This document shows positions 2,332 to 43,343 of a DNA stretch of 64,000 nt, piece by piece. How positions within the stretch are numbered: the first letter of the stretch is position 1; the number at the start of each line of letters is the position of its first letter. Made by a program: the position numbers and the translations under genes. This DNA comes from Orbicella franksi (Eukaryota). The notes beneath the pieces are model-generated. The model had not been told where the DNA came from, searched no databases, and was given only the letters and a program-made list of their open reading frames with translations. The stretch spans positions 8,618,001 through 8,682,000 of the forward strand of contig OZ116704.1 of NCBI GenBank assembly GCA_964199315.1. The letters run 5' to 3'.

Positions 2332-5300
2332 ATGTCTTCTCGACGCCGTAGTACTGGCAGGAACTTGCCCGCAGACCCTCGGACCACAACGGTCATCAAA
2401 AATGAAGAAGCTGGCATTGCGTTGATAACGGCGACCAATCACGAGTGGGAAGAGGAATACCAAAGATTGCTTCTCGAGCACCGAGACTTGAAGGAAAACT
2501 ACGACAAAATGGAGAGCAAGTACCAAGAAATCCAGAAGGAAAATGTGAAAGTAACGAGGCATATGGAGCTCTCAATTGAGAAGTTCAACCGAGAAAAAGA
2601 CGGCCTCATTCGACAAAAAGAGGAGCTTAACATTCAAAATGAGAAACTGCGGAGCGATGTTCGCGAAAAGGGTGGCAAGATTGGCGACTTGCAAAAGGCT
2701 CTAGTGGAAAGCCAAAAGAAGGCCGATTCTCGCAAGGAGGAGCTGTTCACCAAAACCAAGCAACTAGAGAAGTTGGAAATTCTCATCAACGGTCTTCAGA
2801 ACCACACCATTCCAGAACTGAAACAGAAGCTCAACAAGTCTGAGGCTGACATGGAGATATTCAAGGAGAAAAGTAAACAGCTTAACGTGGATCTTGATAA
2901 AGCTGAAGAAAAGAATGATGAAGATCAACAGACCATTGAGAAACTACGCAAGGAGAAGAACGCACTTATCGAGAAGCTGGCTAGGGCCGAACGCGAGACG
3001 AGGGAGGCCGAAGACGCGCGCCATAAGGAAGAAGACAAGGTAGTCAACCTGCAAAACAAAGAAATATCGCTTCACGACAAGATCAGTCAGTTGGACGCGG
3101 AACTTCTCGCTGCGGAATCAAAGATAAGAGACTTGGAAAACGAGCTGAACAGGCGGCTGGCCGAACCAGTCGAAAAGAGTTACAACATCAATGTAGTGGA
3201 AAGTGAACCAGCACTTCAGTCAGCTCCACCTAGCTTTTCATTTGGAGATCACTACGACAAAGAGCAGTTCGAGATGCTGGAGAAAAAAGTAAAGGACCTG
3301 GCAGATAAGAACAAGCGATTTGAAGACGAGAACTTAGGCTTGAAGGGGAAACTCGATATGGCCAGTAAGGATATCAACAAGTGGGAGAAAAAGTATGAAG
3401 ACGAGAACAGGGAGAAGAGTAAGATTGCAGCTCTGCTTGAAAATGAAAAGGGGAATTATGGACGGCTCAAGAATGAGTACAACGAGCTGAAAAGCCAGCT
3501 GGCGAAGGCGGAGAGGACGATAGAGCATGATAAGAAGGAGATGGCTAGAAAGGACAGAATCATAGAAGAACTGAGGGCGAAAATTCTGCAGCTGGAGCAA
3601 GACGTAGAGGATCGAGAGGGCACCATTGCCAAGCTTGAAATGAAGCTAGAGCAGTTGGAGAAAGAAATGGAAAAGCTGCACGAGGCCACTTTGGAACATC
3701 AGAAAAAATATGGCGATCTTGATAGTGATTATAAAGTCAGTGAAAAAGAGAAAGAGTCCGTACAACGAGATCTCGACCAAGTATCCATAAAAATTGCTGA
3801 GTTGGAGAGTAAGTTGAGAGAATCTGAAGAAGAGAAAAACTACTTGCATAAGGAGAACGCAGATCTTCGACAGAAGCGGTTGCGCTTGGAAGATGACTTG
3901 GACACTATTAACAAAGATAAAACAGTGTTTGAGAATCAAGTCCAAGACTGGTCTGACCAAAGCAGCAAACACCGCAAGGTAGCCGACAATATGAAAAAGA
4001 AACTGGCTCAAGCTCAAGACGAGGCAGAGCAGTACAAGAAAGAACTGGCGCAGAACAACAACAAGATAGACGAGTTGAATAAGAAATTGTTCGACCTCAA
4101 CTCGCTTTATGATACGAGCCAGACAGACCTTTCAAGTGCCCAGGACAATAGCGCGTTCAAAGATGACGAAATAAAGCATTTGAATAAGAAGATTGACAAC
4201 AAAGAGAATGAAATTAGCAAGCTTGAAGCTCAGCTAGAGAAGACGACAAAAGAAAGGGACAATGCTGAGGTTGAACTTGCTGGTGTCCTGGAAAAACTTC
4301 AGCATATGGAACCAAAACGAACAACAAACGATGAAGTCTTCAAACCAGCCGAGGTGACCTATTCTTACCAGCAACCAGACTTGGAAACTGACCTAGCACC
4401 CCTCCGTCAGAGAATCTACGAACTTGACAATGAAAACAACAGGTTGAAAAAGATTGAAGAACATCTCCAAAGCGACATCAAAGACAGGTTAGTCCAAATC
4501 GCTGCACTGGACAGAGAGAATACTAAGGTCAAAGCAGAAAATGAAGACTGGGAGAGAAAAGCAAATGATATGAAGAGAAAAATACACGCCCTGGAGAAAG
4601 AGGAAGATGAACTTATGGACACCAATACCGACCTACGCGAAAGACTAGATGACCTGAGTCCAGAGGTTGACAAGCTGCAGAAAAAGGTAGAAACGTTAAC
4701 CCTTGAGCGCGACAGACTGAAGGAATATCTCAGCGAGTCGAACTTCAAATTCACCCAGAGCAAAGAAGATTACAACAAAAAGAGTCTGGATTTCTCGGAG
4801 CAGGTAAAAGTAAACAGCACGCTTGGGAAGACTGTTAAGAAGCACGAAGCTACAATGGAATCATTGACCCAAAAGTGCAAAATGCTGGAAGAAGAACTAG
4901 AAGATTTGAGACCGGAATTGAAAGCAGCATTGGCGAAAAATGAAACATTGGAGACCGAAAACAAAGAATTGGATTCTCGCAATAAAATACAAAAACGCAA
5001 GATAGACGACTTGCAAAAAGAACTACGAGAAGAGATCGAAGCAAAGGAGTTGCTGCAACAAGATGTCGACTCATTGGGCTACAAGTTGAACGTCGCAGAC
5101 GCAAACAACAAGGCACTAACCAAGCAAAGAAATGATTTGCAAAGTCAGATCGACGACCTGGAAAGCAAACTAAGGAAAATCAAGCCAGAGCTCGAACAAT
5201 GTCGAAACAAGCTTAAAGACAAAGATCGCATCATAAGTCGATTGCAATCAGATTTGAAAGACAAGGATTCGCAGCTTACCGCAGCCAAACGAAAGATCAA

Positions 5301-8300
5301 TACTCTGGATGAGACATGCACCTCATTAAGAAAAGAGGCAGAGGCTCATAAGAGTGCAAGTGAAATTAACCGAAATCGCGTAAAGGAGCTTCAAATTCAG
5401 CTTCAGGAGATGGGTAACAGCATGCAGACAGCCGTGGCGAACGTCTCCGTCGTTCATTCAGCACCACCACAAAGCTTCAGAGAAGAAAGGCTCCGCAGTA
5501 CACCTGACGAAAGGATTCACGACTTGGAGACACTGCTGAAGAAGAGCGAGGCTCGTGAAGATCAGTTAAGGGATCAGCTGCAACGCCTTGAGAACCGTCT
5601 TCCTATAGCAGAGAAGGACGCTAAAAAAGCTCAAGACAAAATAAGCGAGCTTCAACCTAGTGTAACCAATCTACAAAGGAAACTGGAGGACCTAAGAAAA
5701 GTGTTAGACAGAAGCAACCGTGAAAAAGAAGATGCCAAAAAAGAGTTGATGGAGGCTCAAACACAACTGACAGTTTTGAAAACAAAAGGCGAGGCGGACG
5801 CGAATGAAATCTCATCCTTGAAAAGTCAGTTAGAACAAGCCAACCGACGTCTCGCAGAGAATCATGAAAAACTGCTAGCTATTGACGAGGAACATGTGCA
5901 TCTTCGCTTGCTTGCAGATGGTCATAATAAAGACAAGGACGACCTCAAGACAGCGTATGAGAGATTGCAAATAAAAAAGAACGAACTGGAAAACACGGTG
6001 GAAATAAAGGAGTCCAATTTGAAATCAAGCCAACATGCTTGCGACACGTTAAGAGAGGAGAAGATTAAGGCACAACAGGAGCTTAACGAACTTCGGCGGA
6101 CAACTTTAGTTGACTTAAAGAGAAACCTTACCCGCATGCAAGGTGAGCGAGATCGTGCTTTGGAAGACGGCAGGATGGCTATGTCGAAAATAGAAGATCT
6201 TGAAAATCAGTTGGCAGAGGCCATGACGAAACGAAAAGAACTAGAAAGGGACAACGACGACCTCGAAGCTGAGATACGCCAACTGAAGAACGAAATTGAA
6301 ACGAATCGTAAAAAGATTGAGGACCTGGAGGATAAAATAGAAGTATTAAACCTTGAACTCGAGAGAGACGAGAAAGATATAGATTCTTTGAAGGAAGAAA
6401 AAATCAAGCTCGAAGATGAGTGTGCAGACCTCCAAGTTAAACTGGCAGAGAAGCAGGATGTTATTAACATTGCTCCGATGCAAGTCGCCAATGTAGAAAC
6501 AACCTACGCAGCCGCCCCCGGGTTTGATTTCGGTTCAGATCCAGACGCTTTAAGGGATCTTGAAGATGAAAATATGGATCTAAAAGAGAAGCTACAAAGA
6601 GGTGAAATGGAATACGACGTTCTGCGAGAGCAACTAAATGACTACAAGAACAAGCTGGGAGACTCGGAGGGCAAGTGCCAGCGTCTTGAGACAAACCTTA
6701 AAGACAAAGACAATCGCCTGCAGGAGCTTGAAAAGACGTTGCCAGAGGCTGTGGAGGAGCTAAATTTGGTAACTGATAAATATCATTCAGCGGAACGCGA
6801 ACTAGAGCTCTTAAAGGATGAGTTACAAGACGCACAGACCAAGTTAAGTTCTGCTGAAGCACAACAAGCTGCTGGATTTGCCAAACTCAGAACACTGCAG
6901 CAACAACTAGAAGCTGCCCAGAAGGACTTGCTTGACAAGAATGACGATGTTATCGAAAAACAACGTAAAATCAACGAGCTCTACGCTATTCTGGAGAGCG
7001 GAGGCAAGGACTCAGATCGCTTGAAGCAAGTTATTGAGGAGTTGAGAGAAGATGTTGACCTTAAAGACAGAGAGAACGCAAAACTACAGAAGGATATTCG
7101 CATCACTCAAGAAAACCTCGCTAAACTTCAAGCAGCCTTGGAGGACATGGAAGGCAGGTTAAATGACACAGAGAATGAGCGAGAAGAATACAAAATGAAA
7201 GCCGATGGTTTAGAGGTAGAGATCGAAATGCGCGATAAAGTACTGGAAGAGGCACAACATGAAGTAGACGAAACCAGGGACAAGTTGAAGGCAGCCAAGA
7301 AAGAGATTGACGCCCTTCGTAGTCAACTAAAAGAAGCAAATGTCAGCTTAAAGGCAGCCACTGATGAGAAGAGGATCCTTGAGAAACGAATTGCCGAACT
7401 GCAAGCAATAATTGAACAGCTGAGGAAAGAATTATCTGCTAAGAATACAGCGATTACTCCTAAATCTGGAACAAGCGATGCATATCTAAACGAACTTAGG
7501 AATAAACTTGCAGAGTACCGAACAAAATATCAGGAAGTTTGCAACGAAAAGATGAGACTAGAGCTGGAACTGCGAGAAAAAGATGTCAAGATTTCACAAG
7601 TTTCTGGTCCATCGGATACATTACGCGAAGAGCGAGACCGTCTTAAAGACGAAGTTATAAAACTGCAAGGCACTCTCAAAGAAACAAAGAAAAACTATCA
7701 AAAAGCTCAAAGGGATATAGAAGAACTACAACGTCGCTTGGTGTCAAAGGACAGCGAAATAAAGCGCTCGGAAGATAAAATTGCAAAACTAGAGGAGGAA
7801 AAAGAAAAAATGAAGAAAGACTACGCCAACTTGGAGAAAAAGAACTCGGATTTGAAAGTTGAATACGAGAAGCTCAAATACGAGAAGAACAAGGCAGAAA
7901 ATGAACTTTCTCTGCTAAAGAAGAAATTCCAGGCTCTGCAAAACCAGATCAACACAGTGGATGTGCCCAGGCAGAAGCAAGACGTTGTGAGCAGAAAGAA
8001 GTATCAAGAATTGGAGGCAAGTTGTCAGGATGCACTGCGTGAAAAGGAGAGGGCAAAGAGTGATATGGCTGCTTACCGAACTAAGATGGCAAGGTTGGAA
8101 GCCGAGATGAACGAACAGAAGAGAGAGAAAGACGTTTTGGAAGATGAAAAGCATCGTCTAAGGAACAGCGAAGCTGAGCTTAAAAACAAGCTCCAAACAT
8201 CGAGAGACAGACACAAGGAAGACAAAGACAAGATGCTGGAGTGGCGTAAAAACAATTTCTCACCCTTAGAGCAAGAACTTCAGAGAACCAAAGGACTCAT

Positions 8301-10917
8301 CAAAAAGCTCGAAAAGATGAACGCAGCCAAAGACCACGAAATTGGAGATTTGAAGGACGATCTTGCAGATCGTGATAGGAGAATTGCCGAGTTGGAGGAC
8401 GAACTGGAAAATCAGGATGTCACTGACGCTGGGCCACTAGACTCAGTTAACATAGACATCAGAGGAGACTCAGAAGCACTTCAACGGGCTCTGGATGAAA
8501 AAGCAGATGCGGTGAAAGAAGGTCAGAGGTTGAAAAGCAAATTGTGGACTATAGAGCACGACATGGAAATTCAGAAGACAAAAGAAGCTCAGCAAGAAAA
8601 AATGGTAGCTGAAGTGAATAACATGAACGACAAATTGAAGGACGAAATACGACAGCTAAAGAAAGGAACTTGGGACCAACAAGGGTCATACAACAAGCTC
8701 ATTAAAGAGAATAGCGAGCTCGCCTACCAAGTTAACACGTTGAAAGAAGACAAAGAAGACTTGGACAAAGACATTCAAGAACTCCGCGATGAGCTGAACG
8801 ACGTAAGAGGAGAAAATAGAAAATTAATGATAGAGAACAAAGACCTCAAGATGGACCTGCAGCAGTTAGAAATCAAGCTGCACGAATTGGAAATTGGACA
8901 CAAGCTTGCAAAGGACGACAACGAGAAAATCAGGAGTGATCTGTTACAGACTCAGAGCGAGAATGCAGATTTGAAGGACAGCTTGAACAGGCGTGATGAT
9001 GAAATGATCCAGGTGCAAGCAGTAGCTACAGTGGAAAGTGCCCCACCCATGATGTTCGAAGATGACGTGGATGGAATAAAACGGGACAAAGACAAACTGC
9101 AAATTGAGCTAGAGGCGGCGGAAGATCAGGTTAAAATGCTGCACGACGAACTTGACGACAAGCAGGCCAAAAATGACCAGATTCAAGTCGAGCTGACAGA
9201 AGCCAGAAGAAGACTCAAAGAAGACGAAGCAGACATCAAGAAGCTAGACGCTGAAATCGAAAATCTACGCCACGAGCTGGATCTAGCGAACCAAAACTGC
9301 GACGATCAACGAACCGAGAATCAAAATCTTTTGGAAGCAAAGGAAAATCTTCAGACAGAGGTGACCGATTTGCGTGCAGATGTGAAAGATATGGAGACAG
9401 AACTACAAAAACTAGCTAAGGTGAAAGCTGATTTGGAACGAGAGCTGAAGAGAGCCGGTCAAGCACCCATAGAAAGGCGACCTTCACGAGATCTTCACAA
9501 CGAAAAAGAAAAGAAGATCAGAGAACTGTCAGAAAAAGTCGTACAGTTGGAGCGGGATATACAGAAGGGTGGATACGAACTGACATCACTGAGAGAAGAG
9601 AATGATGACTTGCAAGAGAAGATAAATAGCCTAAGGGATGAGAACAACTTCCTCCATTCCAAGTTGTCCCAGCTTGAACATGATAACAGGAGAGATAATA
9701 ACAAGATCGTTGAACTCGAAAAAGAGAAGCAAGAACTGCAAGATATGTTAGACAACAGCAGTGGCGGAATCGATTCCGGGAGAGACAAAGACCTGACGAC
9801 AGAAGAGAACAAGACATTGTTAGAGAGAAACAAAAAGCTGCAAAATGATCTAGAACATCTCAAGCAGGAAAAAGCCAACATGAAGAGGCAACTGGATGAG
9901 TACAATAGGAGGTTAGATGATAACTCGAATCAGCTAGCCGTTCAGATTACGAAATTTGTTGGAGATCAGAGCGAGACATTCAGGAAAGACGCCCAGGAGA
10001 AAGACAACAAAATTGATAAGCTGCAGCAAGAGAAGTTGGAAGTAGAAAAGAAGTTAGAAAGTCTGACAGAGGAGTTGGATGCAGCACAATCTAATCTCAG
10101 CGACATTCAGAACCAAAATGAAATTCTTCAGGAGGACATAAAGACCTTAAAGGAGGACAAAGCCAAGCTGGATAACAAACTTATTGAAGAAATGAACTTC
10201 AGCAAGGTCAAGACCGCTGAGCTGGAGGCCGAACAGGATATTCTTAAGAACAAGATTAAGGACAAAGACGATCTTGTCAAAAAGTATGAAAAACAACTTC
10301 AGCAGCTCCGAGAACAGTTGGCCATGTCTGTTCCCAGCGACCAGGCCTCAACCACTTTGATACTGGATGTAGACAAGCGTCGGAAGCAGCGCCAGCACAG
10401 CCTGATGCTGTCCTACCAAGAGGGTTTGATGAACAGGCCAGGTGGACTGTACCGCTCGACAAGTGAAAGCAGTCTCCCCAACGGCGACATCTCCAGGTCA
10501 AGCGACAGCGGCAAAAGCGACTTAGAGCACTCTCAGATTGGCGAACTCCTCAGTAAAGAGATCCCGCAGAGTAGACGAAACAGGGACAGCGCACCCAGAG
10601 ACCACGTAGGTGAGACGGTTGAGGCTACCTCAAAGGTCACTACAGAGTCAGAGCCTGATTATGCCGCACAGTTACGCAGCAGCACGCCAGTCGACGATAA
10701 TGAAGATATAAAGAGCAGCAGGAGACCATCTGATAGAGATTCTGGAAGCCAACGTTATGGAGGTTACCGGGACAGTGACAGCACTCGAAGCAGAGTCAGT
10801 AGCGGTAGAGACAGAGACCGAGATTCAGACAGCATCAGAGGCCGTGAGTCAGACAGGGCTGACAGGCGTTCCGAACGTGGAAAGGACCGCAACAGATCTG
10901 AATGCCAGCAGAATTAG
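2332..10917 (+). CDS. Giant coiled-coil protein A (2861 aa from ATG 2332), coded within one exon; C-terminus CQQN
   Basis: Uninterrupted 8.6 kb ORF, E/K/L/D/Q-rich heptad-type sequence with rare Pro-containing breaks. Splice acceptor ttactttgcattgcag| at 2247/2248; ATG context agcatcATG matches B (agcaccATG). Colinear with paralogue B over its whole length, with many synonymous differences. No orthologue recognised. Confidence 0.9.
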   Translation: MSSRRRSTGRNLPADPRTTTVIKNEEAGIALITATNHEWEEEYQRLLLEHRDLKENYDKMESKYQEIQKENVKVTRHMELSIEKFNREKDGLIRQKEELNIQNEKLRSDVREKGGKIGDLQKALVESQKKADSRKEELFTKTKQLEKLEILINGLQNHTIPELKQKLNKSEADMEIFKEKSKQLNVDLDKAEEKNDEDQQTIEKLRKEKNALIEKLARAERETREAEDARHKEEDKVVNLQNKEISLHDKISQLDAELLAAESKIRDLENELNRRLAEPVEKSYNINVVESEPALQSAPPSFSFGDHYDKEQFEMLEKKVKDLADKNKRFEDENLGLKGKLDMASKDINKWEKKYEDENREKSKIAALLENEKGNYGRLKNEYNELKSQLAKAERTIEHDKKEMARKDRIIEELRAKILQLEQDVEDREGTIAKLEMKLEQLEKEMEKLHEATLEHQKKYGDLDSDYKVSEKEKESVQRDLDQVSIKIAELESKLRESEEEKNYLHKENADLRQKRLRLEDDLDTINKDKTVFENQVQDWSDQSSKHRKVADNMKKKLAQAQDEAEQYKKELAQNNNKIDELNKKLFDLNSLYDTSQTDLSSAQDNSAFKDDEIKHLNKKIDNKENEISKLEAQLEKTTKERDNAEVELAGVLEKLQHMEPKRTTNDEVFKPAEVTYSYQQPDLETDLAPLRQRIYELDNENNRLKKIEEHLQSDIKDRLVQIAALDRENTKVKAENEDWERKANDMKRKIHALEKEEDELMDTNTDLRERLDDLSPEVDKLQKKVETLTLERDRLKEYLSESNFKFTQSKEDYNKKSLDFSEQVKVNSTLGKTVKKHEATMESLTQKCKMLEEELEDLRPELKAALAKNETLETENKELDSRNKIQKRKIDDLQKELREEIEAKELLQQDVDSLGYKLNVADANNKALTKQRNDLQSQIDDLESKLRKIKPELEQCRNKLKDKDRIISRLQSDLKDKDSQLTAAKRKINTLDETCTSLRKEAEAHKSASEINRNRVKELQIQLQEMGNSMQTAVANVSVVHSAPPQSFREERLRSTPDERIHDLETLLKKSEAREDQLRDQLQRLENRLPIAEKDAKKAQDKISELQPSVTNLQRKLEDLRKVLDRSNREKEDAKKELMEAQTQLTVLKTKGEADANEISSLKSQLEQANRRLAENHEKLLAIDEEHVHLRLLADGHNKDKDDLKTAYERLQIKKNELENTVEIKESNLKSSQHACDTLREEKIKAQQELNELRRTTLVDLKRNLTRMQGERDRALEDGRMAMSKIEDLENQLAEAMTKRKELERDNDDLEAEIRQLKNEIETNRKKIEDLEDKIEVLNLELERDEKDIDSLKEEKIKLEDECADLQVKLAEKQDVINIAPMQVANVETTYAAAPGFDFGSDPDALRDLEDENMDLKEKLQRGEMEYDVLREQLNDYKNKLGDSEGKCQRLETNLKDKDNRLQELEKTLPEAVEELNLVTDKYHSAERELELLKDELQDAQTKLSSAEAQQAAGFAKLRTLQQQLEAAQKDLLDKNDDVIEKQRKINELYAILESGGKDSDRLKQVIEELREDVDLKDRENAKLQKDIRITQENLAKLQAALEDMEGRLNDTENEREEYKMKADGLEVEIEMRDKVLEEAQHEVDETRDKLKAAKKEIDALRSQLKEANVSLKAATDEKRILEKRIAELQAIIEQLRKELSAKNTAITPKSGTSDAYLNELRNKLAEYRTKYQEVCNEKMRLELELREKDVKISQVSGPSDTLREERDRLKDEVIKLQGTLKETKKNYQKAQRDIEELQRRLVSKDSEIKRSEDKIAKLEEEKEKMKKDYANLEKKNSDLKVEYEKLKYEKNKAENELSLLKKKFQALQNQINTVDVPRQKQDVVSRKKYQELEASCQDALREKERAKSDMAAYRTKMARLEAEMNEQKREKDVLEDEKHRLRNSEAELKNKLQTSRDRHKEDKDKMLEWRKNNFSPLEQELQRTKGLIKKLEKMNAAKDHEIGDLKDDLADRDRRIAELEDELENQDVTDAGPLDSVNIDIRGDSEALQRALDEKADAVKEGQRLKSKLWTIEHDMEIQKTKEAQQEKMVAEVNNMNDKLKDEIRQLKKGTWDQQGSYNKLIKENSELAYQVNTLKEDKEDLDKDIQELRDELNDVRGENRKLMIENKDLKMDLQQLEIKLHELEIGHKLAKDDNEKIRSDLLQTQSENADLKDSLNRRDDEMIQVQAVATVESAPPMMFEDDVDGIKRDKDKLQIELEAAEDQVKMLHDELDDKQAKNDQIQVELTEARRRLKEDEADIKKLDAEIENLRHELDLANQNCDDQRTENQNLLEAKENLQTEVTDLRADVKDMETELQKLAKVKADLERELKRAGQAPIERRPSRDLHNEKEKKIRELSEKVVQLERDIQKGGYELTSLREENDDLQEKINSLRDENNFLHSKLSQLEHDNRRDNNKIVELEKEKQELQDMLDNSSGGIDSGRDKDLTTEENKTLLERNKKLQNDLEHLKQEKANMKRQLDEYNRRLDDNSNQLAVQITKFVGDQSETFRKDAQEKDNKIDKLQQEKLEVEKKLESLTEELDAAQSNLSDIQNQNEILQEDIKTLKEDKAKLDNKLIEEMNFSKVKTAELEAEQDILKNKIKDKDDLVKKYEKQLQQLREQLAMSVPSDQASTTLILDVDKRRKQRQHSLMLSYQEGLMNRPGGLYRSTSESSLPNGDISRSSDSGKSDLEHSQIGELLSKEIPQSRRNRDSAPRDHVGETVEATSKVTTESEPDYAAQLRSSTPVDDNEDIKSSRRPSDRDSGSQRYGGYRDSDSTRSRVSSGRDRDRDSDSIRGRESDRADRRSERGKDRNRSECQQN

Positions 10918-11008
10918 GTACAGGAATCAAATAACTGTTGTCAGGATTTATGAACTCTCACAGCAGTGTTCATCTAAACTGTAGTTCAGCACACCATTTC
11001 TTACTTAG

Positions 11009-11053
11009 CTGTCCAAAGAGGAAAGCAGCAGAGCAAAGTGCCAGCAGAATTAG
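11009..11053 (+). other. Putative alternative terminal mini-exon LSKEESSRAKCQQN*
   Basis: Acceptor catttcttacttag| at 11008. Phase-0 reading ctg tcc aaa gag gaa agc agc aga gca aag tgc cag cag aat tag. The 19 nt tgccagcagaattaggtac is identical at 10903-10921 and 11039-11057. Confidence 0.4.
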
Positions 11054-12361
11054 GTACCAAAATTACAAAACTATATCTAATCACTACCGTAGGTTGTACT
11101 TCAAAAGTAGTCTTGACTTGAGCTTAAATGTGTTACGCCCTTTTTGGTTAGATGATAAGTCGTTTTTTACTGATTTGGTGGTCAATGCTGATCACAATGA
11201 AAGAGCGCTCAATAAGACTCGAAAAGACCAGAGAAGAACTACAACTACTTTTATATCTTAGGGTCTTTAATATTTAGTTACACTGTCACCGGATAGACAC
11301 GACGACCGTAGAAAGTAAAAAGGTCCTTAGTACATAATTATTAGGATCCTCGTAGTCCAAGCCATTTTAGTTGGCTACAAGTATTTTTTTGAATCATTAT
11401 TTCTTACACAGTAATAGGGCAACGTGAGATCAGTTGAATGTACCTGGGGGTCCAAAAGCGTGGGGCTGCGAGACTAAAATCTAACCTTGCGCTTGGTTTA
11501 TACGTCCTCTTTAGAAAGAACAGAATATAAGGCAAGGAATTTAACCCTTCAGAAAAGATATTTCTATTAGATATCTTCAGTTGGAACTACAGGTTCAAAA
11601 CGTAAATTGAGGATGCCTTTTGAAATGCAAGATTCCAAATTATATTTCTACCTGTTCAAGCGGCGTCCAACTAACATGCACGTTGACAACAAAGTCAGAC
11701 TTGTTTTTATTACGCTAATGTAATTTCGCCGTATTATGGCAAATTTTTCGCATTATTTTCATTAATATCTATCTCGATGTTATAGCCTTAACCTATTCGT
11801 TTGGCAGGATAATAGAATTCGAATGCAAACTAGGAAATTCGTTCGATCTAATTATGCAATGACTAATTTCAGTACACAGTCCGTAGTTACTTACTGCGAA
11901 GGAAGATCGACTTCAGCGTGTACTATCCCCTAAGCGTTCTAGTGATGCCCATCCAGTATGTTTTAAGGCGTGTACGTCACCCTGTATCACAGAAAATTGC
12001 AGTCGGGTGACGTTTGTATCATAAGTTCATAACATGAAGAAAGAATTGCTTCAGAGGAAAATAATCTCGGAATGAAAACAAAGCTTCTTTTAATCCTTCC
12101 TGGCGCGTGCCTTGATCCCAGTAATTCTACGTGTAATACTGTGGGCACACGAAACAAAGCACACTTATTGAGGGATGACCTTTGATGAAATTTGTTTATG
12201 TATAACTTAGAACTCCATTATCCTTGTAGACGAACTAGTTTTTAAACAACCTCGTCCGCGTAGTGGGCGAAGGCTGTGCTATACTTAGAAATGAATATAG
12301 CATTTTTTGCTGATGTATACTAATAAAAGTCTTTTGTTTTCTTAACAATGCGCCTTTGGAA

Positions 12362-12664
12362 AATAAGTCTGCATACAAGCCAAGTGGCGACCATCAGATG
12401 CAGGCCTGCGCTTACTTCCGGTTTCAGTAGCATGAAGAAACTAGGAGTATTTCTACTCTCCCCTGGATGGGATGCTAGTCCTTCGCAGGGTTATCCCCAC
12501 AGCATTAAATTCGCCGGTATCCATTTATACACCTGGCTGGAGAGAGACGCTGTGAGAGTAAAGTGTCTTGCCCAAGAACACAACACAATGTCCCCGGCCA
12601 GGGCTCGAACCCGGACCGCTCAATCCGGAGACGAGCGCACTAACCATGAGGCCACCGTGCCTCC
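12362..12664 (-). mobile_element. Full-length tRNA-derived SINE
   Basis: Minus-strand head ggaggcacggtggcctcatggttagtgcgctc (A-box-like) and gggttcgagccc (B-box), then gtgttcttgggcaagacactttactctcac core and tail. ~300 bp. Confidence 0.85.
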
Positions 12665-13071
12665 TGCCATGATGAGGTACAAAAGCATTGTAAAAGTAAC
12701 TTCACCTTCTAAGACACAAGATCAAAATGATAAATCTCCTTATAGGCTGAAAACAAACTTATTAACTACAGACAATTATATAAAATCTCCATACCCATCT
12801 TTCGATGCTTGCTACGAGAAGTTCCCAGTTTACCAAGACATAACTGCATAATCCCCTGATTAACAGTTTTGTGTACTGCTGCTGCCTGTCAAACAAGGGA
12901 GAAATTAGATTTTCATCACTTTCAACAAATGAAGTTAATCTTCTAGTCCCTTACTTTGTAATACAAACTAAAAGACATGAAGTTTTGGCAAATATGTTTT
13001 GATTTATCTGGACTTAAAGTTGTTAATAATTGAATGTACATGTATGAGCTCTGGATATGGTTTGACTGCCA

Positions 13072-22499: not shown

Positions 22500-25400
22500 A
22501 TGTCTAGTGCTGGTGAGCTCGAAAGCTTACTGACGGAAAGCGTGACCACAACGGTCATTAAAGACGAGGAATCGGGTATTGCGTTGATAACGCAGACCAA
22601 TCATGAATGGGCAGAAGAATACCAAAGGCTGTTGCTCGAACATAAGCAGCTTCTGACCAGCTATGATGGCAGGGAGAGCAAGTACCAAGAATGTCAGAGA
22701 GAGAATGTTAAGATCCAGAGGCATATGGAGCTGTTAACTGAGAAGTACAATGTAGAGCGAGACAGCCTCACGCGGCAGAAAGAGGACGTTAACATTCAAA
22801 ACGAGAAGTTACGGGCAGAACTCCGTGAAAAGAGTATCAAGATCGGCGACCTGCAGAAGAGTTTGGTGGAACGTCAGAAGAGGGTCGACTCGCAGAAGGA
22901 GGAGCTTCTTGGCAAAGTCAAGCTGGTCGAGAAGTTGGAAACTGCCATCAACGATCTTCAAAACAAGACTATTCTAGAGCTTAAACAGAAGCTTAACAAG
23001 TCCGAAGCCACCCTGGAAGTCGTTCAGAAGAGAAGTAGCCAACTTTCCTTAGAACTCAATCAGGCTGACGACCAGTGCGAGGAATATGAACGGTCCATTG
23101 AGAAACTGCGCCAGGAGAAGATAGAACTTATGGAGAAGCTAGCCCGAGCCGAATACGACATCAGAATGGCCGTTGACGCGAGAAACAAGGCAGAGGAGAA
23201 GTTGTCGTCCTTAGTGGAAACAGAAAGATCGCTTCGAGACAAAAACAGCCAGTTTGAAGCGGATCTTCTTGCTGCACAATCAAAAATAAGAGATCTGGAA
23301 AATGAACTCAATAAGCGGCAGGCCGAAGCAGAGGAATCAGGTTACAACATCACTGTTGTACAAAGTGATGTGAACCTTCAGTCCGCTTCACCTGAAGTTT
23401 CCACGTTTGTCTCTTTAGGAGATGATGTGCTTAATAAAGAAAAGGAAACACTCAGGAAGAATGTTGAAGAGCTGGACGTTAAGGTCAAGCGATTTGAAGG
23501 TGAGAACTTCGATCTGAAGAGGAAACTCGATATGGTTTCTAAGGACGTCAACAAGTGGGAGAATAAGTATGAGGAGGAGATTAAGGAGAGGAACAAAATT
23601 ACCATTCAACTTGAAAATGAGAAGGGCAACTATGGGCGGCTTAAAAACGAGTATAATGAACTAAAAAGCAAGCTGGCTAAGGCAGAGAGGACAAATGAAC
23701 ACGACAAGAAGGAGATGATTAAAAAAGACGACATGATAAACGATCTGAAAGCAAAGATTGTCCAGCTGCAGCAAGACATCGATGCTCGAGAAGACACCAT
23801 TGCCAAGCTTGAAATGAAACTGGAGCAGCTGAATAGGGAAATGGAAAAGCTTTATGAGGACGTGTTGGAACACCAGAGGAAATATGGCGATCTTAACAGT
23901 GATCACAAAGTCAGTGAACAGGAGAAAGAATCTGTACAAAGGGATTTCCACCACGTGTCCATAAGAATTGGGGAGCTGGAGAGTAAGTCAAGAGAATCGG
24001 AGGACGAAAAGAAATACCTTCAAAAGGAGAACGCCGATCTCCGACAGAAGCTATTACGACTGGAAGACGAACTGGACACTACGTTCAAGGATAAGACAGT
24101 GTTTGAAAATCAGTTGCAAGAATGGTCTGACAAAAGTACCAAGGAACGCAAGATGGCCGAGAATTTGCGGAAGAGGTTTGCACAAGCTCAGGAAGAAGTG
24201 GAACAATACAAGAATGAGTTGATACAAGTGAACACCAAGATCGACGAGTTGGTTGAGAGATTGTCGGAACTTAACTCTCAGTACGATACTAGCCAAACAG
24301 ACCTTTTAAGTGCTCGGGCCGATTGCGAGTATAAAGATGACGAAATAAAGCGTTTGAAAAAGGATATTAACGACAAAGAAAATAACATCAGCAAGCTCGA
24401 AGTTCAGTTAGAGAAGGCAATAACAGAGAGGAACAATTCAGAGGTTGAACTTGCTGGCGTTCTTGAAAAGCTCCAACACGTGGAAATAAATCGAGTGGGT
24501 AACGAAGAACAGCTCACATCCGTAGACGTGACCTACTCGCACAGTCAGACACAAGAACTTCAAGGTGACTTGGCACCCCTCCGTCGAAGAATCTATGAAC
24601 TTGAAAACGAAAACAACAGATTGCAAACAATTGAGGAACATCTTCATAGCGACATCAAAGACAGTGAGAACAAGATAGCTTCATTGCAGAGGGATCTGAA
24701 TAGGGCCAATACAGAAAATGAACATTGGGAGAGAAAAACAGCTGATTTGGAGGATAAAATCAACATCCTGGAAAAGGAGGAAGATGATCTGAATAGGATC
24801 AGCACCGATCTTCAAGGACGAAAAGATGAACTGAACGTGGAAGTCGAGAAGCTGCAGAAGAAGGTGGAGACGCTAACTCTTGAGCGCGACAAGTTGAAGG
24901 AATATCTCAACGATTATAACTCGAAACTCACCCAGAGCAAACAAGAGCAAAACGACAAAAGTCTAGAATTCTCGGAACAGGTTAAAGTCAACACCACGCT
25001 TAAAATAATAGTAGAGAAACACGAAGCTACCTTGCAATCACTGACTCAAAGATGTAGAGAGCTGGAAGAAGAACTGGAACATTTGAGACCGGAATTAAGA
25101 ACTGCATTGGCCAGAAATGAAACACTGGAAGCGGAGAGCAAAGATCTGGATTTTCGTACCAAAGTACAGAAACAGACGATCGAAGACCTGCAAAAAGAAC
25201 TACGAGAAGAGATTAATAGCAAGGAGTTACACGAACAAGATTTAGACTCGTTGACCTACAAATTAACCGTGGCTGAGGGAAATAACAAGGCTCTGACCAA
25301 GCAAAGAAATGATTTGCAAAGTCAGATCGATGACTTGGAGACCAAACTGAGGAAAATCAAGCCAGAGCTTGAACAATGTCGTAACAAGCTAAAAGACAAA

Positions 25401-28400
25401 GATCGCATCATAAGTCGGTTGGATGCAGATGTGAAAGACAAGGATTTGCAGCTTAACGCCGCCAAACGAAAAATCAGCACTCTAGAGGACAATGTCACCT
25501 CCACAAGGAAAGAGTTAGAAGCCCAAAAGAGTGCAAACGAAATCAACCGTAATCGCGTACAAGAACTTCAAATTCAGCTTCAGGAGATGAGCAGTACAAC
25601 GCAGACAGCTGTGACGAACGTTTCTATCGTTCAGTCAGCACCACCACAAAGTTTCACAGAAGAACGTTCCCGCAGCACTTCAGACGAAAGGGTTCAGGAC
25701 TTAGAGATACTGCTAAAGAAGAGCGAGAGCCGGGAGAGTCAGTTGAGGGAAGAGCTGCAGCTCCTTGAGGACCGCCTTCCAAAAGTAGAAGTTGACGCTA
25801 AGACAGCTCAAGGGAAAGTGAACGAGATTCAACGCAATGTCAATACGCTTCAGAAGAAGCTAGAAGAGGCCAGAAAAATGTTAGAAAGAAGTAACCATGA
25901 AAAAGATGCTGCCAAACAAGATTTGATGGAAGCTCGAACACAGCTGACACTTTTGGAAACCAAGGGCATGGCGGACGCGAATGAAATCTCATCCCTACAA
26001 AGTCAGCTGGACCAAGTCCACCAACGTCTCGAGGAGACTCATCAAAAGCTTCTTTCTCTTGACGAGGATCATGTACACCTTCGCCTGGAAAAAGATATCC
26101 ACGATAAAGAAAAAGAAAACTACAATGCAGCGGTTGGGAGATTGAAGGGTAAAAAGCTCGATCTGGAGAAGAGGGTCGAATTGCTGGAGTCCAGTTTGCA
26201 ATCAAGCAAACAAACATGCGACGCATTGAGAGAGGAGAAGTCAAAGGCTCAACAGGAACTCAACGAACTGCGACAGACAACTCTAGCCGACTTGAAGAAA
26301 AACCTTACCCGCATGCAAGGGGAGAGAGACCGTGCTTTGGAAGACTACAGGGCAACTATGTCGAACATAGAACACCTTGAAAATCAGTTAGCTGAGGCCG
26401 CGGTGAAACGAAAAGAGCTAGAGAGGGACAACGATAATCTTGATAACGAGACTCGGCATCTGAAGAACGAAATCGAAACAAATCGTACAAGGATTGAGGA
26501 ACTAGAGGACAAAAGCGACACATTAAATCTGCAGATCCAGCAATACGAAAAGGGTATAGATGAGTTGAGAGAAACAAGAAGCAGACTCGAAGATGAAGTT
26601 GCGGACCTTCAAGTTAAGTTGGCAGAGAAACAAGACGTCATTAATATTTCTTCTGTAAAAGTCTCCAGTGTAGAAACTACATATGCAGCAGCCCCTGGTT
26701 TTGAATTCGGTTCACAACAAGATACTTTCATGGACCTTACTAATGGAAAATTCGATCCCAAGGAGAAACTTAAACAAGTAGAAATGGAGTACAATGTTTC
26801 AAAAGAGCAGCTGAATGATTACAAAAACAAGCTGGGAGTCGCAGAAGAAAACAATTACACCTTGGAGTCAAACCTTAAAGATGCAGAAAATGACCTCAAG
26901 GATCTTGAAATGAAACTGCGAGAAACCGTAGAAGAGTTAAATTTGATGACTGATCAATATCAATCAGCGGGACGCGAACTCGAGCTCTTAAAAGAAGAAT
27001 TACAAGATGCACAGACCAAGTTAAGTACTGCTGAAGCACAGCAAATTACAGTAGTTGCCAAACTGGGAACAGTGCAGCAACAGCTAGATGCTACCCAGAA
27101 GGACCTGCTTGACAAGAATAGTATTGTTATCGAAAAACAACGCAAAATCAATGAGTTCTATGCTATCCTTGAGAGCGGCGACAAAGACTCTGATCGCTTG
27201 AAACAAGTTATTGAGGAGTTAAGAGAGGACATTGACGTGAAAGACAGAGAGAACGCAAAGTTACAGAAATATCTTCGTGTAACTGAAGAAAATGTTGCTA
27301 AACTCCAAGTGACCTTGGAAGAAATGGAAGCAAAGTTACACGATACCGAACATCAGAGAGAGGAATACAAAATGAAAGTCGATGGGTTTGAGGTAGAACT
27401 CGAAATGCGAGATAGAGCACTGGAAGAGGCACAACGTGAAGTAGATGACACCAGGGGCAAGTTTAAAACATCTAAGAAGGAAATTGTCACCATACGTAGT
27501 CAACTAAAGGAGGCCAATGCCAACTTAAAGGCCGCTGGTGACGGAAAGAGGATCCTTGAAGGACGAATTGCTGAGCTTCAGGCAGTTATTGACAAGTTAA
27601 GGAAAGAATTGTCAGCTGGGATTAATTCTAAGCCTGGAAATGGTAATGTACATGTAGATGACTTGAGGAAGAAGCTTCAAGAATACAGAGTAAAATTACA
27701 AGATTTCAACAACGAGAAAATGAAACTAGAGCTGGAACTTCGAGAAAAAGATGCAAAGATTACGCGTGATTCTGGTTCTTCGGATACATCACGCGAAGAG
27801 CAGGACCATCTTAAAGACGAAGTTATAAATTTACAAGCTACTCTTAAAGAAACGAAGAAGAATTACCAAAAAGGGCAGAAACTTTCAGAGGAACTCCAAC
27901 GCCGCTTGGTGTCAAAGGACAACGAAATCAAACGCTATGACGACAAAATTGCGAAATTACAGGAAGAAAAAGAAAAACTGAAGAAAGACTGTGCCAACCT
28001 TGAAAAGAAGAACTCTGATTTGAAGATCGAGTATGAGAAGCTTAAATATGAGAAAAGCAAATCAGAAAATGAATTATCTCTGTTGAAGAAGAAATTTCAG
28101 GCTCTGCAAAACCAACTGAACGTAGCGGATGTTTCCAAACACAACCAAGATTTTGTAACCAGAAAGAAGTATCAAGAGTTAGAAGGAAGCTGCCAGGATG
28201 CACTGCGAGAGAGGGAGAAGTCAAGGAGTGAAATGGCTGCTTACCGCACCAAGATGGCAAGTCTAGAAGCCGAGCTCAACGAACAAAAGAGCGCAAAGGA
28301 TATTTTGGAGGATGAGTTGCATCGTTTCAGGAACATCGAAACTGAGCTTAAGGCTAAGCTCCAAACATCGAGGGACAGGCATAAAGAAGACAAAGACAAG

Positions 28401-30947
28401 ATGCTGGAGTGGCGTAAAAATAATTTCTCTGCCTTGGAACAGGAACTTCAGAGAGCCAAAGGACTTATTAAAAAGCTCGAAAAGATGAACGCAGCCAAAG
28501 ACCACGAAATTGAAGATTTGAAGGACGATCTTGCTGATCGTGAAAAAAGAATTGCCAAGTTGGAGGACGAACCTGTGGGGGAGGACATTATCGACGCTAG
28601 AGCCTTGGACTCAGTTAACATCGACATTAGAGGTGATTCTCAAGCCGTTAAAAGGGCTCTGGATGAAAAGGCAGATGCAGTGAAAGAAGTTCAGAAGCTT
28701 AAAAGCCAAATCTGGAATTTGGAGCACGACATGGACATCCTTAAGACAAATGGGACTCGACAGGAACGACTGGTAGCTGAAGTGAACAGCCTGAACGACA
28801 AGTTAAAAGATGAGCTACGACAGCTGAAGAAAGGAAGCCGGGAACAGCAGAGATCATTCAAGCTTGATGCAGGGAAAAGCGAGCTCGTCTACCAACTTAA
28901 CACGTTGAAAGAGGACAAAGAGGAACTGGAAAGGGACAATCAAGAACTCCGCGACGAGCTGAATGAAGTCAGCAGTGAAAATCTGAAATTGATAATGGAG
29001 AGCAAAGAACTCAAGCTCGACCTGCAGCAACTAGAAATCAAGCTGAACGAGCTGGAAATGGGACACAAGCTAGTAAAGGAAGACAACGATAAAATTCGAA
29101 GTGATTTGCTATTGTTCCAGAGCGAGAATACGGATCTGAAAGAAAGTCTTAATAGACGGAATGATGACTTTATCCAGGTGCAAGCAGTAACCACAGTAGA
29201 GACGGTAGAAAGCGCCCCGCCAATGATGTTTGATGTTGACCTTGACGAAATAAAACGAGAAAGAGATAAACTGAAAATCGAGTTAGAGGCGGCAGAAGAT
29301 CAAGCTAAGATGCTGCAGACGGAACTTGAGGATAAGCAGACCAGAAATGGTAGGATTCAAGTTGAGCTGATTGAGGTGAAAAGAATAGTTACAGAATATG
29401 AAGTAGACATCAAGAAGCTAACCACTGAACTAGAAAACCTACACCATGAGCTGGATCTGGCGAATCAAAACTACGAAGATCAACGGAACGAAAATCGTGT
29501 TCTTTTGGATGCAAAAGAAAATCTCCTGGTGGAGACTAACGACTTACACAAGGAGGTGAAGGATCTGGAAATACAGCTTCAAAACCTTGCTAAGGAGAAA
29601 GCAGAATTGGATAGACAGATAAAGAATGCCGGCCAGACAGCTACAGAAAGACGATCCTCGCGAGATCTTCACAATGAGAGGGAAAAGAGGATCAGAGAGC
29701 TCATGGAAAAAGTCTCACAGTTGGAGCATTACATTGAAAAGAGTGCATACCAAGTGTCAACCCTGGAAGAGGAAAATAGTGACCTGCAATTAAGGATCAA
29801 TACCCTGAAAGATGAGAACAGCGAGCTCTACACGAAGTTATCCCAGTTTGAACTCGATATTAGGAGGGACAATAGCAGGATCGTGGAGCTCGAGAAGGAG
29901 AATCAAGAGCTGCAAGAAATGTTAGGAAACAGTAATGCAAACGGAATCGATTCGGGGACTGAGAGCACAGCACTGTTGCAGCAGATCAATACATTGAACG
30001 ACAGAAACAACAAGCTGCAAACTAGTCTACAACAAGCCAAGCAAGACAAAGCCGAGTTGAAAAAACAACTCGATGAATACAGTAACAGGTTCGACGACAC
30101 CTCTAGGCAGCTAGCTGTGCAGATTACTAAATTCGCTGGAGATCAGAGTGTGTCATTGAGAAATGTGGCCCTAGAGAAAGACGAAAAAATTGAAAAGCTG
30201 CAGCAAGAGAAGCTGGAATTCGCAATGAGGCTGGAAAGTCTGAAAGAGGAATTAGAGGCAGCAAAATCTAGCTTCAGCGATATTCAGAGTCAAAATGAAA
30301 CTCTACAGCTAAGCATCAAGACCCTGACAGAGGACAAAATCAAACTGGATATCAAGCTTGTGGAAGAAATAAACCTCCACAAAGTCAAGATTGCTGAAAT
30401 GGAGGCCGAACAAGACATTCTGAGGAACAAGATTAAAGAAAAAGACAATCTGGTGAAAAAGTTTGAAGTACAAGTTCAGCAGCTCCGCGAACAGTTGGCA
30501 ACATCTGTGTCCAGCAACCAGGTGTCTACTACGTTGGTCATTGATGTCAGTGACAAACGTCGTAGGCAGCGACAGCTCGGTCAGTCGTCGTCTTATAAAG
30601 AAGGCTTGATGAACAGGTTTGGGGGACTGTACCGTTCGACAAGTGAAGGCAAGATGCCTTCTGAGCACTCTCAGTTTGGTGGGACGCTCAGTAAGCAGCA
30701 CTCTCGTGGCGATCTCAACAACGTTAGTTCAGCAGAACACCTCTTCAAAGAGGCAGTGGTGACCACCGAATCCCAGCCGGAGAATAGCACCCAGGATAGC
30801 ACCAGGAGACCAATCTCCGATGATGAAGACAAAAAGAGTGGAAGGAAAGTATCTGAAAAAGATTCTGAGAACCAAGTGCAAGAGAAGGAAAGGCGGCCTT
30901 CCGTTCGCGGAAAGGATCGTAACAGAGCCGATTGCAAACAGAATTAG
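22500..30947 (+). CDS. Giant coiled-coil protein B (2815 aa), tandem paralogue of A; C-terminus CKQN
   Basis: Uninterrupted 8.4 kb ORF colinear with A from TTTVIK.E..GIALIT.TNHEW to GKDRNR..C.QN*. Homologous acceptor at 22412, 87 nt before the ATG. Confidence 0.9.
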   Translation: MSSAGELESLLTESVTTTVIKDEESGIALITQTNHEWAEEYQRLLLEHKQLLTSYDGRESKYQECQRENVKIQRHMELLTEKYNVERDSLTRQKEDVNIQNEKLRAELREKSIKIGDLQKSLVERQKRVDSQKEELLGKVKLVEKLETAINDLQNKTILELKQKLNKSEATLEVVQKRSSQLSLELNQADDQCEEYERSIEKLRQEKIELMEKLARAEYDIRMAVDARNKAEEKLSSLVETERSLRDKNSQFEADLLAAQSKIRDLENELNKRQAEAEESGYNITVVQSDVNLQSASPEVSTFVSLGDDVLNKEKETLRKNVEELDVKVKRFEGENFDLKRKLDMVSKDVNKWENKYEEEIKERNKITIQLENEKGNYGRLKNEYNELKSKLAKAERTNEHDKKEMIKKDDMINDLKAKIVQLQQDIDAREDTIAKLEMKLEQLNREMEKLYEDVLEHQRKYGDLNSDHKVSEQEKESVQRDFHHVSIRIGELESKSRESEDEKKYLQKENADLRQKLLRLEDELDTTFKDKTVFENQLQEWSDKSTKERKMAENLRKRFAQAQEEVEQYKNELIQVNTKIDELVERLSELNSQYDTSQTDLLSARADCEYKDDEIKRLKKDINDKENNISKLEVQLEKAITERNNSEVELAGVLEKLQHVEINRVGNEEQLTSVDVTYSHSQTQELQGDLAPLRRRIYELENENNRLQTIEEHLHSDIKDSENKIASLQRDLNRANTENEHWERKTADLEDKINILEKEEDDLNRISTDLQGRKDELNVEVEKLQKKVETLTLERDKLKEYLNDYNSKLTQSKQEQNDKSLEFSEQVKVNTTLKIIVEKHEATLQSLTQRCRELEEELEHLRPELRTALARNETLEAESKDLDFRTKVQKQTIEDLQKELREEINSKELHEQDLDSLTYKLTVAEGNNKALTKQRNDLQSQIDDLETKLRKIKPELEQCRNKLKDKDRIISRLDADVKDKDLQLNAAKRKISTLEDNVTSTRKELEAQKSANEINRNRVQELQIQLQEMSSTTQTAVTNVSIVQSAPPQSFTEERSRSTSDERVQDLEILLKKSESRESQLREELQLLEDRLPKVEVDAKTAQGKVNEIQRNVNTLQKKLEEARKMLERSNHEKDAAKQDLMEARTQLTLLETKGMADANEISSLQSQLDQVHQRLEETHQKLLSLDEDHVHLRLEKDIHDKEKENYNAAVGRLKGKKLDLEKRVELLESSLQSSKQTCDALREEKSKAQQELNELRQTTLADLKKNLTRMQGERDRALEDYRATMSNIEHLENQLAEAAVKRKELERDNDNLDNETRHLKNEIETNRTRIEELEDKSDTLNLQIQQYEKGIDELRETRSRLEDEVADLQVKLAEKQDVINISSVKVSSVETTYAAAPGFEFGSQQDTFMDLTNGKFDPKEKLKQVEMEYNVSKEQLNDYKNKLGVAEENNYTLESNLKDAENDLKDLEMKLRETVEELNLMTDQYQSAGRELELLKEELQDAQTKLSTAEAQQITVVAKLGTVQQQLDATQKDLLDKNSIVIEKQRKINEFYAILESGDKDSDRLKQVIEELREDIDVKDRENAKLQKYLRVTEENVAKLQVTLEEMEAKLHDTEHQREEYKMKVDGFEVELEMRDRALEEAQREVDDTRGKFKTSKKEIVTIRSQLKEANANLKAAGDGKRILEGRIAELQAVIDKLRKELSAGINSKPGNGNVHVDDLRKKLQEYRVKLQDFNNEKMKLELELREKDAKITRDSGSSDTSREEQDHLKDEVINLQATLKETKKNYQKGQKLSEELQRRLVSKDNEIKRYDDKIAKLQEEKEKLKKDCANLEKKNSDLKIEYEKLKYEKSKSENELSLLKKKFQALQNQLNVADVSKHNQDFVTRKKYQELEGSCQDALREREKSRSEMAAYRTKMASLEAELNEQKSAKDILEDELHRFRNIETELKAKLQTSRDRHKEDKDKMLEWRKNNFSALEQELQRAKGLIKKLEKMNAAKDHEIEDLKDDLADREKRIAKLEDEPVGEDIIDARALDSVNIDIRGDSQAVKRALDEKADAVKEVQKLKSQIWNLEHDMDILKTNGTRQERLVAEVNSLNDKLKDELRQLKKGSREQQRSFKLDAGKSELVYQLNTLKEDKEELERDNQELRDELNEVSSENLKLIMESKELKLDLQQLEIKLNELEMGHKLVKEDNDKIRSDLLLFQSENTDLKESLNRRNDDFIQVQAVTTVETVESAPPMMFDVDLDEIKRERDKLKIELEAAEDQAKMLQTELEDKQTRNGRIQVELIEVKRIVTEYEVDIKKLTTELENLHHELDLANQNYEDQRNENRVLLDAKENLLVETNDLHKEVKDLEIQLQNLAKEKAELDRQIKNAGQTATERRSSRDLHNEREKRIRELMEKVSQLEHYIEKSAYQVSTLEEENSDLQLRINTLKDENSELYTKLSQFELDIRRDNSRIVELEKENQELQEMLGNSNANGIDSGTESTALLQQINTLNDRNNKLQTSLQQAKQDKAELKKQLDEYSNRFDDTSRQLAVQITKFAGDQSVSLRNVALEKDEKIEKLQQEKLEFAMRLESLKEELEAAKSSFSDIQSQNETLQLSIKTLTEDKIKLDIKLVEEINLHKVKIAEMEAEQDILRNKIKEKDNLVKKFEVQVQQLREQLATSVSSNQVSTTLVIDVSDKRRRQRQLGQSSSYKEGLMNRFGGLYRSTSEGKMPSEHSQFGGTLSKQHSRGDLNNVSSAEHLFKEAVVTTESQPENSTQDSTRRPISDDEDKKSGRKVSEKDSENQVQEKERRPSVRGKDRNRADCKQN

Positions 30948-43102: not shown

Positions 43103-43343
43103 CTGTGTTATGAAAACGTTAATGACAATATGGAAATCTATCACACCAAGAGATTATGATCTGTTGGTCAAACGTATTTTCTTACAAATATTATCAGCCG
43201 AAAGGAGCTAATCATTTCTACAGTACACATGACTTGTATATCGGAAAATATCCATCGACTGACTTAATTTTCCAGTATATGCACGAAATTAAAGCTTCAG
43301 AAAAGTGTATGCACAAAGAAAAATCGAACCGCGAGTTGGATAT

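Follow-up and report, generated by a model that had tools for sequence, protein, structure and literature searches.

The stretch of Orbicella franksi DNA analysed here (64,000 nucleotides (nt) of assembly GCA_964199315.1, contig OZ116704.1, positions 8,618,001 to 8,682,000 of the forward strand; hereafter the window, to which plain positions refer) contains three giant open reading frames (ORFs), genes A, B and C, and the present work deals with the C-termini of the proteins encoded by A and B, where a cysteine at the fourth position from the end, Cys(-4), may serve as the acceptor of a farnesyl group. Gene A lies within an open frame extending from 2143 to 10917 on the forward strand, its real start being the Met at 2335, which matches the N-termini of the orthologues. 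The protein ends in ...GKDRNRSECQQN-stop and its paralogue B in ...GKDRNRADCKQN-stop, the end common to both being GKDRNR(S/A)(E/D)C(Q/K)QN. The last codons of A are TGC (10903-10905), CAG, CAG and AAT, and those of B are TGC (30933-30935), AAA, CAG and AAT, followed by the stop TAG (30945-30947). An earlier note on this DNA had pointed to these ends, CQQN at 10903-10917 and CKQN at 30933-30947, as a non-canonical farnesylation signal absent from gene C; both coordinates and residues were found to be exact, and C does end differently, in ...SFKSQLK. The features discussed are collected in Table 1.

Table 1. Features of genes A, B and C in the window (positions counted from its first letter).
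Feature	Positions	Strand	Remarks
Gene A	2335..10917	+	Intronless ORF, 2860 residues; coiled-coil rod and disordered tail of ~190 residues; ends CQQN-stop
Disordered, low-complexity tail of A, rich in S/R/D	10345..10914	+	~Residues 2671-2860; AlphaFold2 and indel-rich alignments
Basophilic kinase-type site R-R-S of A	10864..10872	+	15-17 residues from the C-terminus
Terminal block of A, R-G-K-D-R-N-R-S-E-C-Q-Q-N	10876..10914	+	Putative farnesyl acceptor Cys at 10903-10905
Stop codon of A, TAG	10915..10917	+	Same position in all orthologues, TAG or TAA
Probable 3' untranslated region of A	10918..12330	+	Colinear RNA contigs; contains the cassette 11039-11057; AATAAA at 12322-12327
Exact 19-nt duplicate of the last four codons of A, stop and 4 nt	11039..11057	+	Non-coding
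Gene B	22500..30947	+	Paralogous intronless ORF, 2815 residues; ends CKQN-stop
R-R-P-S site of B	30891..30902	+	Upstream of the B terminal block
Terminal block of B, R-G-K-D-R-N-R-A-D-C-K-Q-N	30906..30944	+	Cys at 30933-30935
Gene C	35453..43144	-	Distant paralogue, ~26% identity, no motif; context only

The terminal block stands at the tip of a long flexible region. When the last 330 residues of A were modelled with AlphaFold2, residues 1-135 formed one helix with a predicted local distance difference test (pLDDT) score above 90, while residues 141-330 scored below 50; a disordered tail is thus predicted, which should leave the C-terminus accessible. Disordered tails of this kind, 150-190 residues in length, follow the coiled-coil rods. 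As the earlier note had observed, the tails of A and B differ by large indels yet reach the same end, A carrying extra blocks of approximately 14 and 32 residues. Both proteins are poor in cysteine (10 residues out of 2860 in A and 9 out of 2815 in B, ~0.35%), and Cys(-4) is the sole one within the last 300 residues of A, B and most orthologues. A basophilic site of the RRxS or KRS type is found 15-18 residues from the end in 11 of the 15 family sequences. The last 25 residues include 6-9 basic and 4-7 acidic ones, interleaved with each other, so that the net charge ranges from -1 to +4; thus, the basic stretch which had been proposed to assist membrane binding beside the CaaX box is not a polybasic anchor.

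The transcript data establish that the stop of A is used in the mRNA. All the sampled words of 9900-11400 are contained in 12 RNA runs, and four runs, each from a different study, yielded a single contig apiece that follows the window colinearly from 8800 to 12311-12458, with no joint between 8800 and 12250. Assuming that its upstream part is colinear too, the X1 contig (10,112 nt) would span approximately 2218-12329 and so cover the complete ORF together with its untranslated regions (UTRs), with no intron. The runs containing the A/B locus are labelled as coral metatranscriptomes, and the unique intergenic sequence just downstream is absent from them or far shallower, which makes contaminating DNA a less likely source of the contigs. 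The motif is therefore the real C-terminus of A, and the splicing out before these codons which had been named as a refutation was not observed. In addition, three orthologues, P0001 of A and P0003 and P0008 of B, are single uninterrupted ORFs ending at the same stop. For B, 14 RNA runs, some of them poly(A)-selected, contained 0.61-0.90 of the words across the stop; this word content, together with the single-ORF orthologues, is indirect evidence that the B stop is used in mature mRNA.

Alternative splicing removing or replacing the motif, perhaps by means of the cassette at 11039-11057, was considered in this context. The cassette is an exact duplicate located behind AG dinucleotides, 120 nt downstream (two exact copies of the 19-mer observed, none expected), and assembled contigs are known to drop rare isoforms. 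Nevertheless, the four contigs run through the stop without any joint, the gene models of the orthologues terminate at this stop as well, and the A orthologue keeps the true end intact while its copy of the cassette has decayed to Cys-Arg-stop (L014 ~11690-11710). Run X11 has a loose end at 11019, the sole one near the cassette; it was rejected as a splice, its letters coming from an unrelated locus (C14:8218242) which shares a 17-mer with the cassette. The use of the cassette as an alternative terminal exon was consequently discarded; it is a decaying 3'-UTR duplication, and a functional C-terminus other than the one described is very improbable.

The 3' end of the A transcript is also marked by repeats. 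The RNA contigs break at a high-copy repeat starting near 12400, and since their ends coincide with this 265-nt element they cannot be read as a poly(A) site. The repeat (approximately 265 nt, interspersed, window 12400-12665) has at least 3,900 first-look genomic candidates with 91-93% identity and an enormous summed depth in the RNA contigs, and no match in Rfam; a second element lies at 13142-13642. The 3' UTR of A gave no Rfam match either. At the P0012 locus (L013 5150-5480), units of ~115 nt starting at the stop codon are tandemly repeated.

The conservation of the motif was assessed with homologues from word-based searches and from an exhaustive HMMER profile search in which the last 330 residues were compared with 1.84 billion representatives. 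The profile search recovered 15 proteins, and the family members which reach the C-terminus all carry the motif, the other matches being truncated fragments or unrelated coiled coils. A third word-based search, covering proteins of 275-875 residues only, gave nothing beyond fragments, and is uninformative on distant full-length relatives. Overall, Cys(-4) was present in 13 of the 13 other complete C-termini recovered, for both paralogues, so that the orthologue check suggested in the earlier note came out in favour of the motif, with one loss in Oculina described below. A-type ends are CQQN in P0006, P0012 and P0013 and CQQS in P0001 and P0014; B-type ends are CKQN in P0002, P0003, P0004, P0007, P0008, P0009, P0011 and P0015. 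Hence the first residue after the cysteine (a1) is fixed for each paralogue, the second (a2) is Gln throughout, and the last (X) is Asn or Ser. Among 14 aligned C-termini, only 7 of the 158 well-occupied columns of the last ~190 residues are invariant, and these include Cys(-4) and Gln(-2); the mean pairwise identity of the 14 tails is 0.78 over the last 13 columns versus 0.56 over the rest. The stop register survives upstream indels, as in P0004, which lacks GKD yet ends in RNRADCKQN.

The constraint acts on the protein. For nine DNA sequences, the ratio of non-synonymous to synonymous differences (pN/pS) was ~0.26 over the last 13 codons, and over the last four pN was 0.083 versus a pS of 0.83, these values being summed pairwise counts and not phylogenetically independent events. 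Synonymous turnover was seen within the block (CAG/CAA at a1 and a2, AAA/AAG at a1, AGT/AGC at X) as well as in the stop (TAG/TAA), and since the residues are kept throughout, selection must work at the protein level. A DNA-level origin of the similarity between the two ends, by a recent gene conversion or because the stop carries a conserved RNA or regulatory element, could be suggested by the context AATTAGG common to both genes and by the duplication of the stop region in the 3' UTRs. Nevertheless, the A and B blocks differ from each other at synonymous and non-synonymous sites alike (GAC/GAT, CGC/CGT, TCT/GCC, GAA/GAT, CAG/AAA), Rfam gave no match, and the codon turnover among orthologues excludes such a cause. 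This explanation is thus largely refuted and can be given hardly any weight. Taken together, A and B both have at the C-terminus a CKQX-type CXXX which is translated and accessible, has been conserved, and is under selection at the protein level.

A single conserved cysteine at the tip of a disordered tail, with basic residues nearby, might also be kept for a chemistry other than prenylation, such as S-palmitoylation, a disulfide or redox cross-link between rods, or metal binding at the rod end. In fact, a soluble protein is not normally palmitoylated unless another signal has first brought it to a membrane; the translations contain no obvious signal peptide, and the cytosol is a reducing compartment; and one cysteine is not sufficient for a metal site. 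Furthermore, the strict -4 register and the conserved Gln(-2) would be left unexplained, and these options were judged unlikely.

The ability of such ends to be farnesylated can be read from published work on yeast. Kim et al. (2023) used the Ydj1 reporter to screen the complete set of 8,000 CXXX ends, and also assayed each CKQX by itself (PMC10320760). Ydj1-CKQN, whose tetrapeptide is identical to the end of B, showed an 88% gel shift which was lost without the beta subunit of farnesyltransferase (FTase; ram1), with a heat-map score of 4.48, and 17 of the 20 CKQX variants were positive (PMC10320760). The only restrictions of the yeast enzyme are D, E, K or R at a2 and K, P or R at X (PMC10320760). 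CKQN, CQQN and CQQS all pass these decision rules, the last two being allowed because nothing else is barred. Therefore, the Asn at X, which the earlier note had regarded as atypical and a reason for doubt, is not an obstacle, most residues being tolerated at this position; among the values available from that study, Asn scores like Gln and Ser (CAQN 4.64, CAQQ 4.78, CAQS 4.92; PMC10320760). Asn is a minority residue in natural CKQX ends, where CKQQ and CKQS make up 65% (PMC10320760). The specificities of yeast and human FTase have been described as "highly similar but not identical", non-canonical ends included (Hildebrandt et al. 2024, PMC11152559). Polar motifs of this type usually follow a shunt route, being farnesylated with no subsequent proteolysis or methylation, as in Ydj1 and LKB1 (PMC10320760).

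The coral genome itself contains three loci of the prenyltransferase beta type (PF00432) and several with alpha repeats (PF01239), any of which may belong to FTase, GGTase-I or RabGGTase. One of the beta-type loci (G000:C5:21022738-21023733) has a full-length beta-subunit domain in a single, apparently intronless frame of 425 residues, and the other two, on C1, are split into exons.

On this basis, the interpretation we favour, by a modest degree of confidence, is that the ends of A and B are non-canonical CaaX farnesylation signals of the CKQX class, as judged from sequence and from analogy with characterized ends. Several points weigh against it. CKQN is negative by PrePS (-5.05) and has a low enrichment factor in the Ras-based screen (PMC10320760), so that its positive call rests on the farnesylation-only reporter. 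The tetrapeptide data come from yeast FTase in a reporter context and not from the coral enzyme. The residue immediately before the cysteine is acidic, and the net charge of the last 25 residues speaks against a strong membrane anchor. Moreover, conservation covers the whole 13-residue block, with a1 fixed in each paralogue and a2 invariant, which is more constraint than FTase alone requires. Finally, one Oculina B-like copy, P0005, has lost the cysteine and ends in ...A-T-K-Q-D-stop. Its tail has a ~290-nt insertion, modelled by the annotators as an intron, and a deletion of ~70 codons (Oculina patagonica, CM126642.1, L009 12076-12575). The stop context of P0005 aligned to that of B with a score of 30, compared with 15.1 ± 2.7 for shuffles (maximum 28), which indicates that T-K-Q-D is homologous to C-K-Q-N with the Cys codon now ACC; as read from this alignment, Cys(-4) has been lost at least once, along with a tail deletion.

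The excess of constraint is what gives substance to the main rival explanation, in which the last ~13 residues would be a short linear binding motif, an unlipidated recognition peptide whose cysteine takes part in binding and is not prenylated. Conservation beyond the CaaX box (R-G-K-D/E-R/H-N-R-A/S-D/E-C-K/Q-Q-N/S), a paralogue-specific a1 and an invariant a2 exceeding the permissive rules of FTase, and the classing of CKQN as a non-substrate by older predictors would all fit such a peptide. Nevertheless, a cysteine fixed at -4 in cysteine-poor proteins is the hallmark of a CaaX box, CKQN itself is efficiently farnesylated in vivo in yeast, and an accessible, cytosolic and permissive CXXX end would be hard to shield from FTase. 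Furthermore, a binding motif is compatible with lipidation, since an uncleaved farnesyl-C-K-Q-N could itself be the epitope. The unlipidated peptide is therefore kept as a serious possibility, although a less probable one than farnesylation.

The farnesylation reading finds its closest counterparts in the shunted CKQX class, represented by human LKB1/STK11 and NAP1L1 (CKQQ) and by yeast Pex19 (CKQQ) and Nap1 (CKQS), with which A and B share Cys(-4), a polar a1 (K/Q), Gln at a2 and a small polar X. The carriers differ, being a kinase, histone chaperones and a peroxin in that class and giant coiled-coil proteins of corals in the present case. LKB1 also has a basophilic RRxS upstream of its cysteine, nearer to the end than the 15-18 residues found in A and B. 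A similar architecture is found in the long coiled coils with atypical polar CaaX ends, Spindly, CENP-E and CENP-F, the farnesyl group of A and B being only predicted. The earlier note had relied on CENP-E and CENP-F as precedents, which is valid inasmuch as their polar CaaX ends are farnesylated; the farnesyl group there serves docking to kinetochore proteins, so that they give no support to lipid anchoring. In the proteins of the kinetochore corona the farnesyl group mediates recruitment between proteins and not membrane anchoring, and the Spindly motif has been lost in several lineages (PMC4436830), which resembles the Oculina loss of Cys(-4).

No homology was detected behind these likenesses. 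Spindly gave weak Atlas feature matches (0.89-0.94) among many unrelated coiled-coil families, its cluster entry of ~600 residues is about one fifth as long as A or B, and neither a Pfam match nor sequence homology to it was detected in A or B. CENP-E differs in its kinesin motor, absent from both. A weak language-model resemblance to a C-terminal fragment of CENP-F was also noted, and A and B were tried as the coral CENP-F and rejected: CENP-F_N (PF10481) is absent from them and no Rb-binding domain was found, PF10490 matching neither the two proteins nor the rest of the genome, and not the control genomes either, and the leucine-zipper repeats (PF10473) reached 21-24 bits against a cut-off of 34.5. 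CENP-F_N is found above the Pfam cut-off at G000:C8:8891870-8892289 and G000:C11:2988412-2988813, which are candidates for the true CENP-F-type genes. With the K-Ras4B anchor, A and B have in common a Cys(-4) after an R/K-rich sequence, but their a1 (K/Q) and a2 (Q) are not aliphatic, making cleavage and methylation unlikely, and a strong net-positive stretch is missing. The tail-anchored golgins (giantin, golgin-84, CASP) are likewise very long coiled-coil rods with a C-terminal attachment device, which is putative in A and B; golgins use a transmembrane helix for this purpose, while A and B have hydrophilic, disordered tails that lack any hydrophobic segment, and no golgin domain was found in either protein with Pfam.

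A and B belong to no known family. Pfam gave only coiled-coil noise below the curated cut-offs and therefore no family identity, and the neighbours in the ESM Atlas scatter over CCDC30, CCDC89, HMMR, ODF2, TPR, Spindly and CENP-F fragments, a pattern which is unreliable. The homology searches returned named homologues only from the stony corals Oculina patagonica and Desmophyllum pertusum, a narrow family, and by this criterion the two paralogues are apparently restricted to stony corals; no paper linking prenylation to these proteins was found. Within the 497-Mb genome of the window, the tail occurs in A and B only. A fourth giant frame, D (3110 residues, G000:C7:8685015-8694347), lies ~3 kb past the end of the window and ends in ...NSNYYL, with no motif, so that A, B, C (on the minus strand) and D make up a cluster of four giant, apparently intronless coiled-coil genes (2563-3110 residues). 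C and D have 26-28% identity to A and both lack the Cys tail; the C orthologue P0010 ends in ...HPQMK and, like C, has no Cys at -4. The tandem arrangement is conserved, as indicated by a 1.1-Mb contig of another species that carries both the B-like P0003 and an A-like fragment, P0025.

The rod of A and B comprises ~2,650 coiled-coil residues and might reach ~0.4 micrometre if fully extended; by inspection only, no hydrophobic N-terminal signal or transmembrane segment was seen in the translations. A short motif, V-x-V-x-(S/A)-A-P-(P/G)-x-x-F, recurs along the coiled coil and interrupts it; it is located in A at residues ~296, 1042, 1393 and 2235 (window ~3220, 5460, 6510 and 9040) and at equivalent places in B, and is kept in the orthologues. 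The identity of P0001 to A is 85% over the last 461 residues and 70% over the first 500, and the Desmophyllum A-type P0006 shows the reverse gradient (55% and 69%, respectively); uneven rates or gene conversion could underlie these gradients along the rod.

If the ends of A and B are farnesylated, the following mechanism can be proposed. The cytosolic FTase would attach a C15 farnesyl to Cys(-4). With a1 and a2 both polar, the tripeptide would probably stay uncleaved and the cysteine unmethylated, following the farnesylation-only shunt of Ydj1, LKB1 and Nap1. An unmethylated single farnesyl is a weak membrane anchor, according to the two-signal principle. Provided that the rods form parallel coiled-coil dimers, two farnesyls would be presented beside a mixed-charge stretch rich in R, K and D, and this doubling of the lipid could compensate for the weakness of the single anchor, allowing a moderate, avidity-based and reversible attachment to a membrane or to a partner protein that reads the farnesyl. 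More speculatively, phosphorylation of the RRxS site 15-18 residues upstream could tune the attachment. The description of A and B as lipid-anchored long tethers, put forward in the earlier note, is consequently too strong as worded, given the mixed-charge flank and the weaker membrane anchor that the shunt route provides. Membrane tethering and protein docking are considered equally likely uses of the lipid, and the paralogue-specific a1 with its invariant a2 fits a retained farnesyl-C-X-Q-N epitope read by a partner. A more specific proposal, which as a whole is rather improbable, is that A and B are rods of ~0.4 micrometre specific to stony corals, with uncleaved farnesyl-Cys-(K/Q)-Q-N tips and an RRxS phospho-switch, docking reversibly to a coral-specific membrane or partner; the docking sites would be, for instance, skeleton-attachment, calicoblastic or symbiosome-associated structures.

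The immediate consequence for annotation is small, the A and B proteins remaining "hypothetical" in public records. Both are readily detected in coral RNA libraries. Were the stony-coral docking proposal true, A and B would be the first case of a CxQN farnesylation signal that occurs in nature and is kept by selection, and cnidarians would have their first lipidated giant structural tether. Independently of it, A and B are a probable addition to the non-canonical CaaX class of the CKQX type. If farnesylated, they would be a naturally selected example of a shunted CKQX end with Asn at X, a signal conserved through gene duplication and across stony-coral species. This would support an animal prenylome wider than the classical predictors allow, and would give a first means of approaching the function of the four giant intronless coiled-coil genes, a cluster which is so far uncharacterised.

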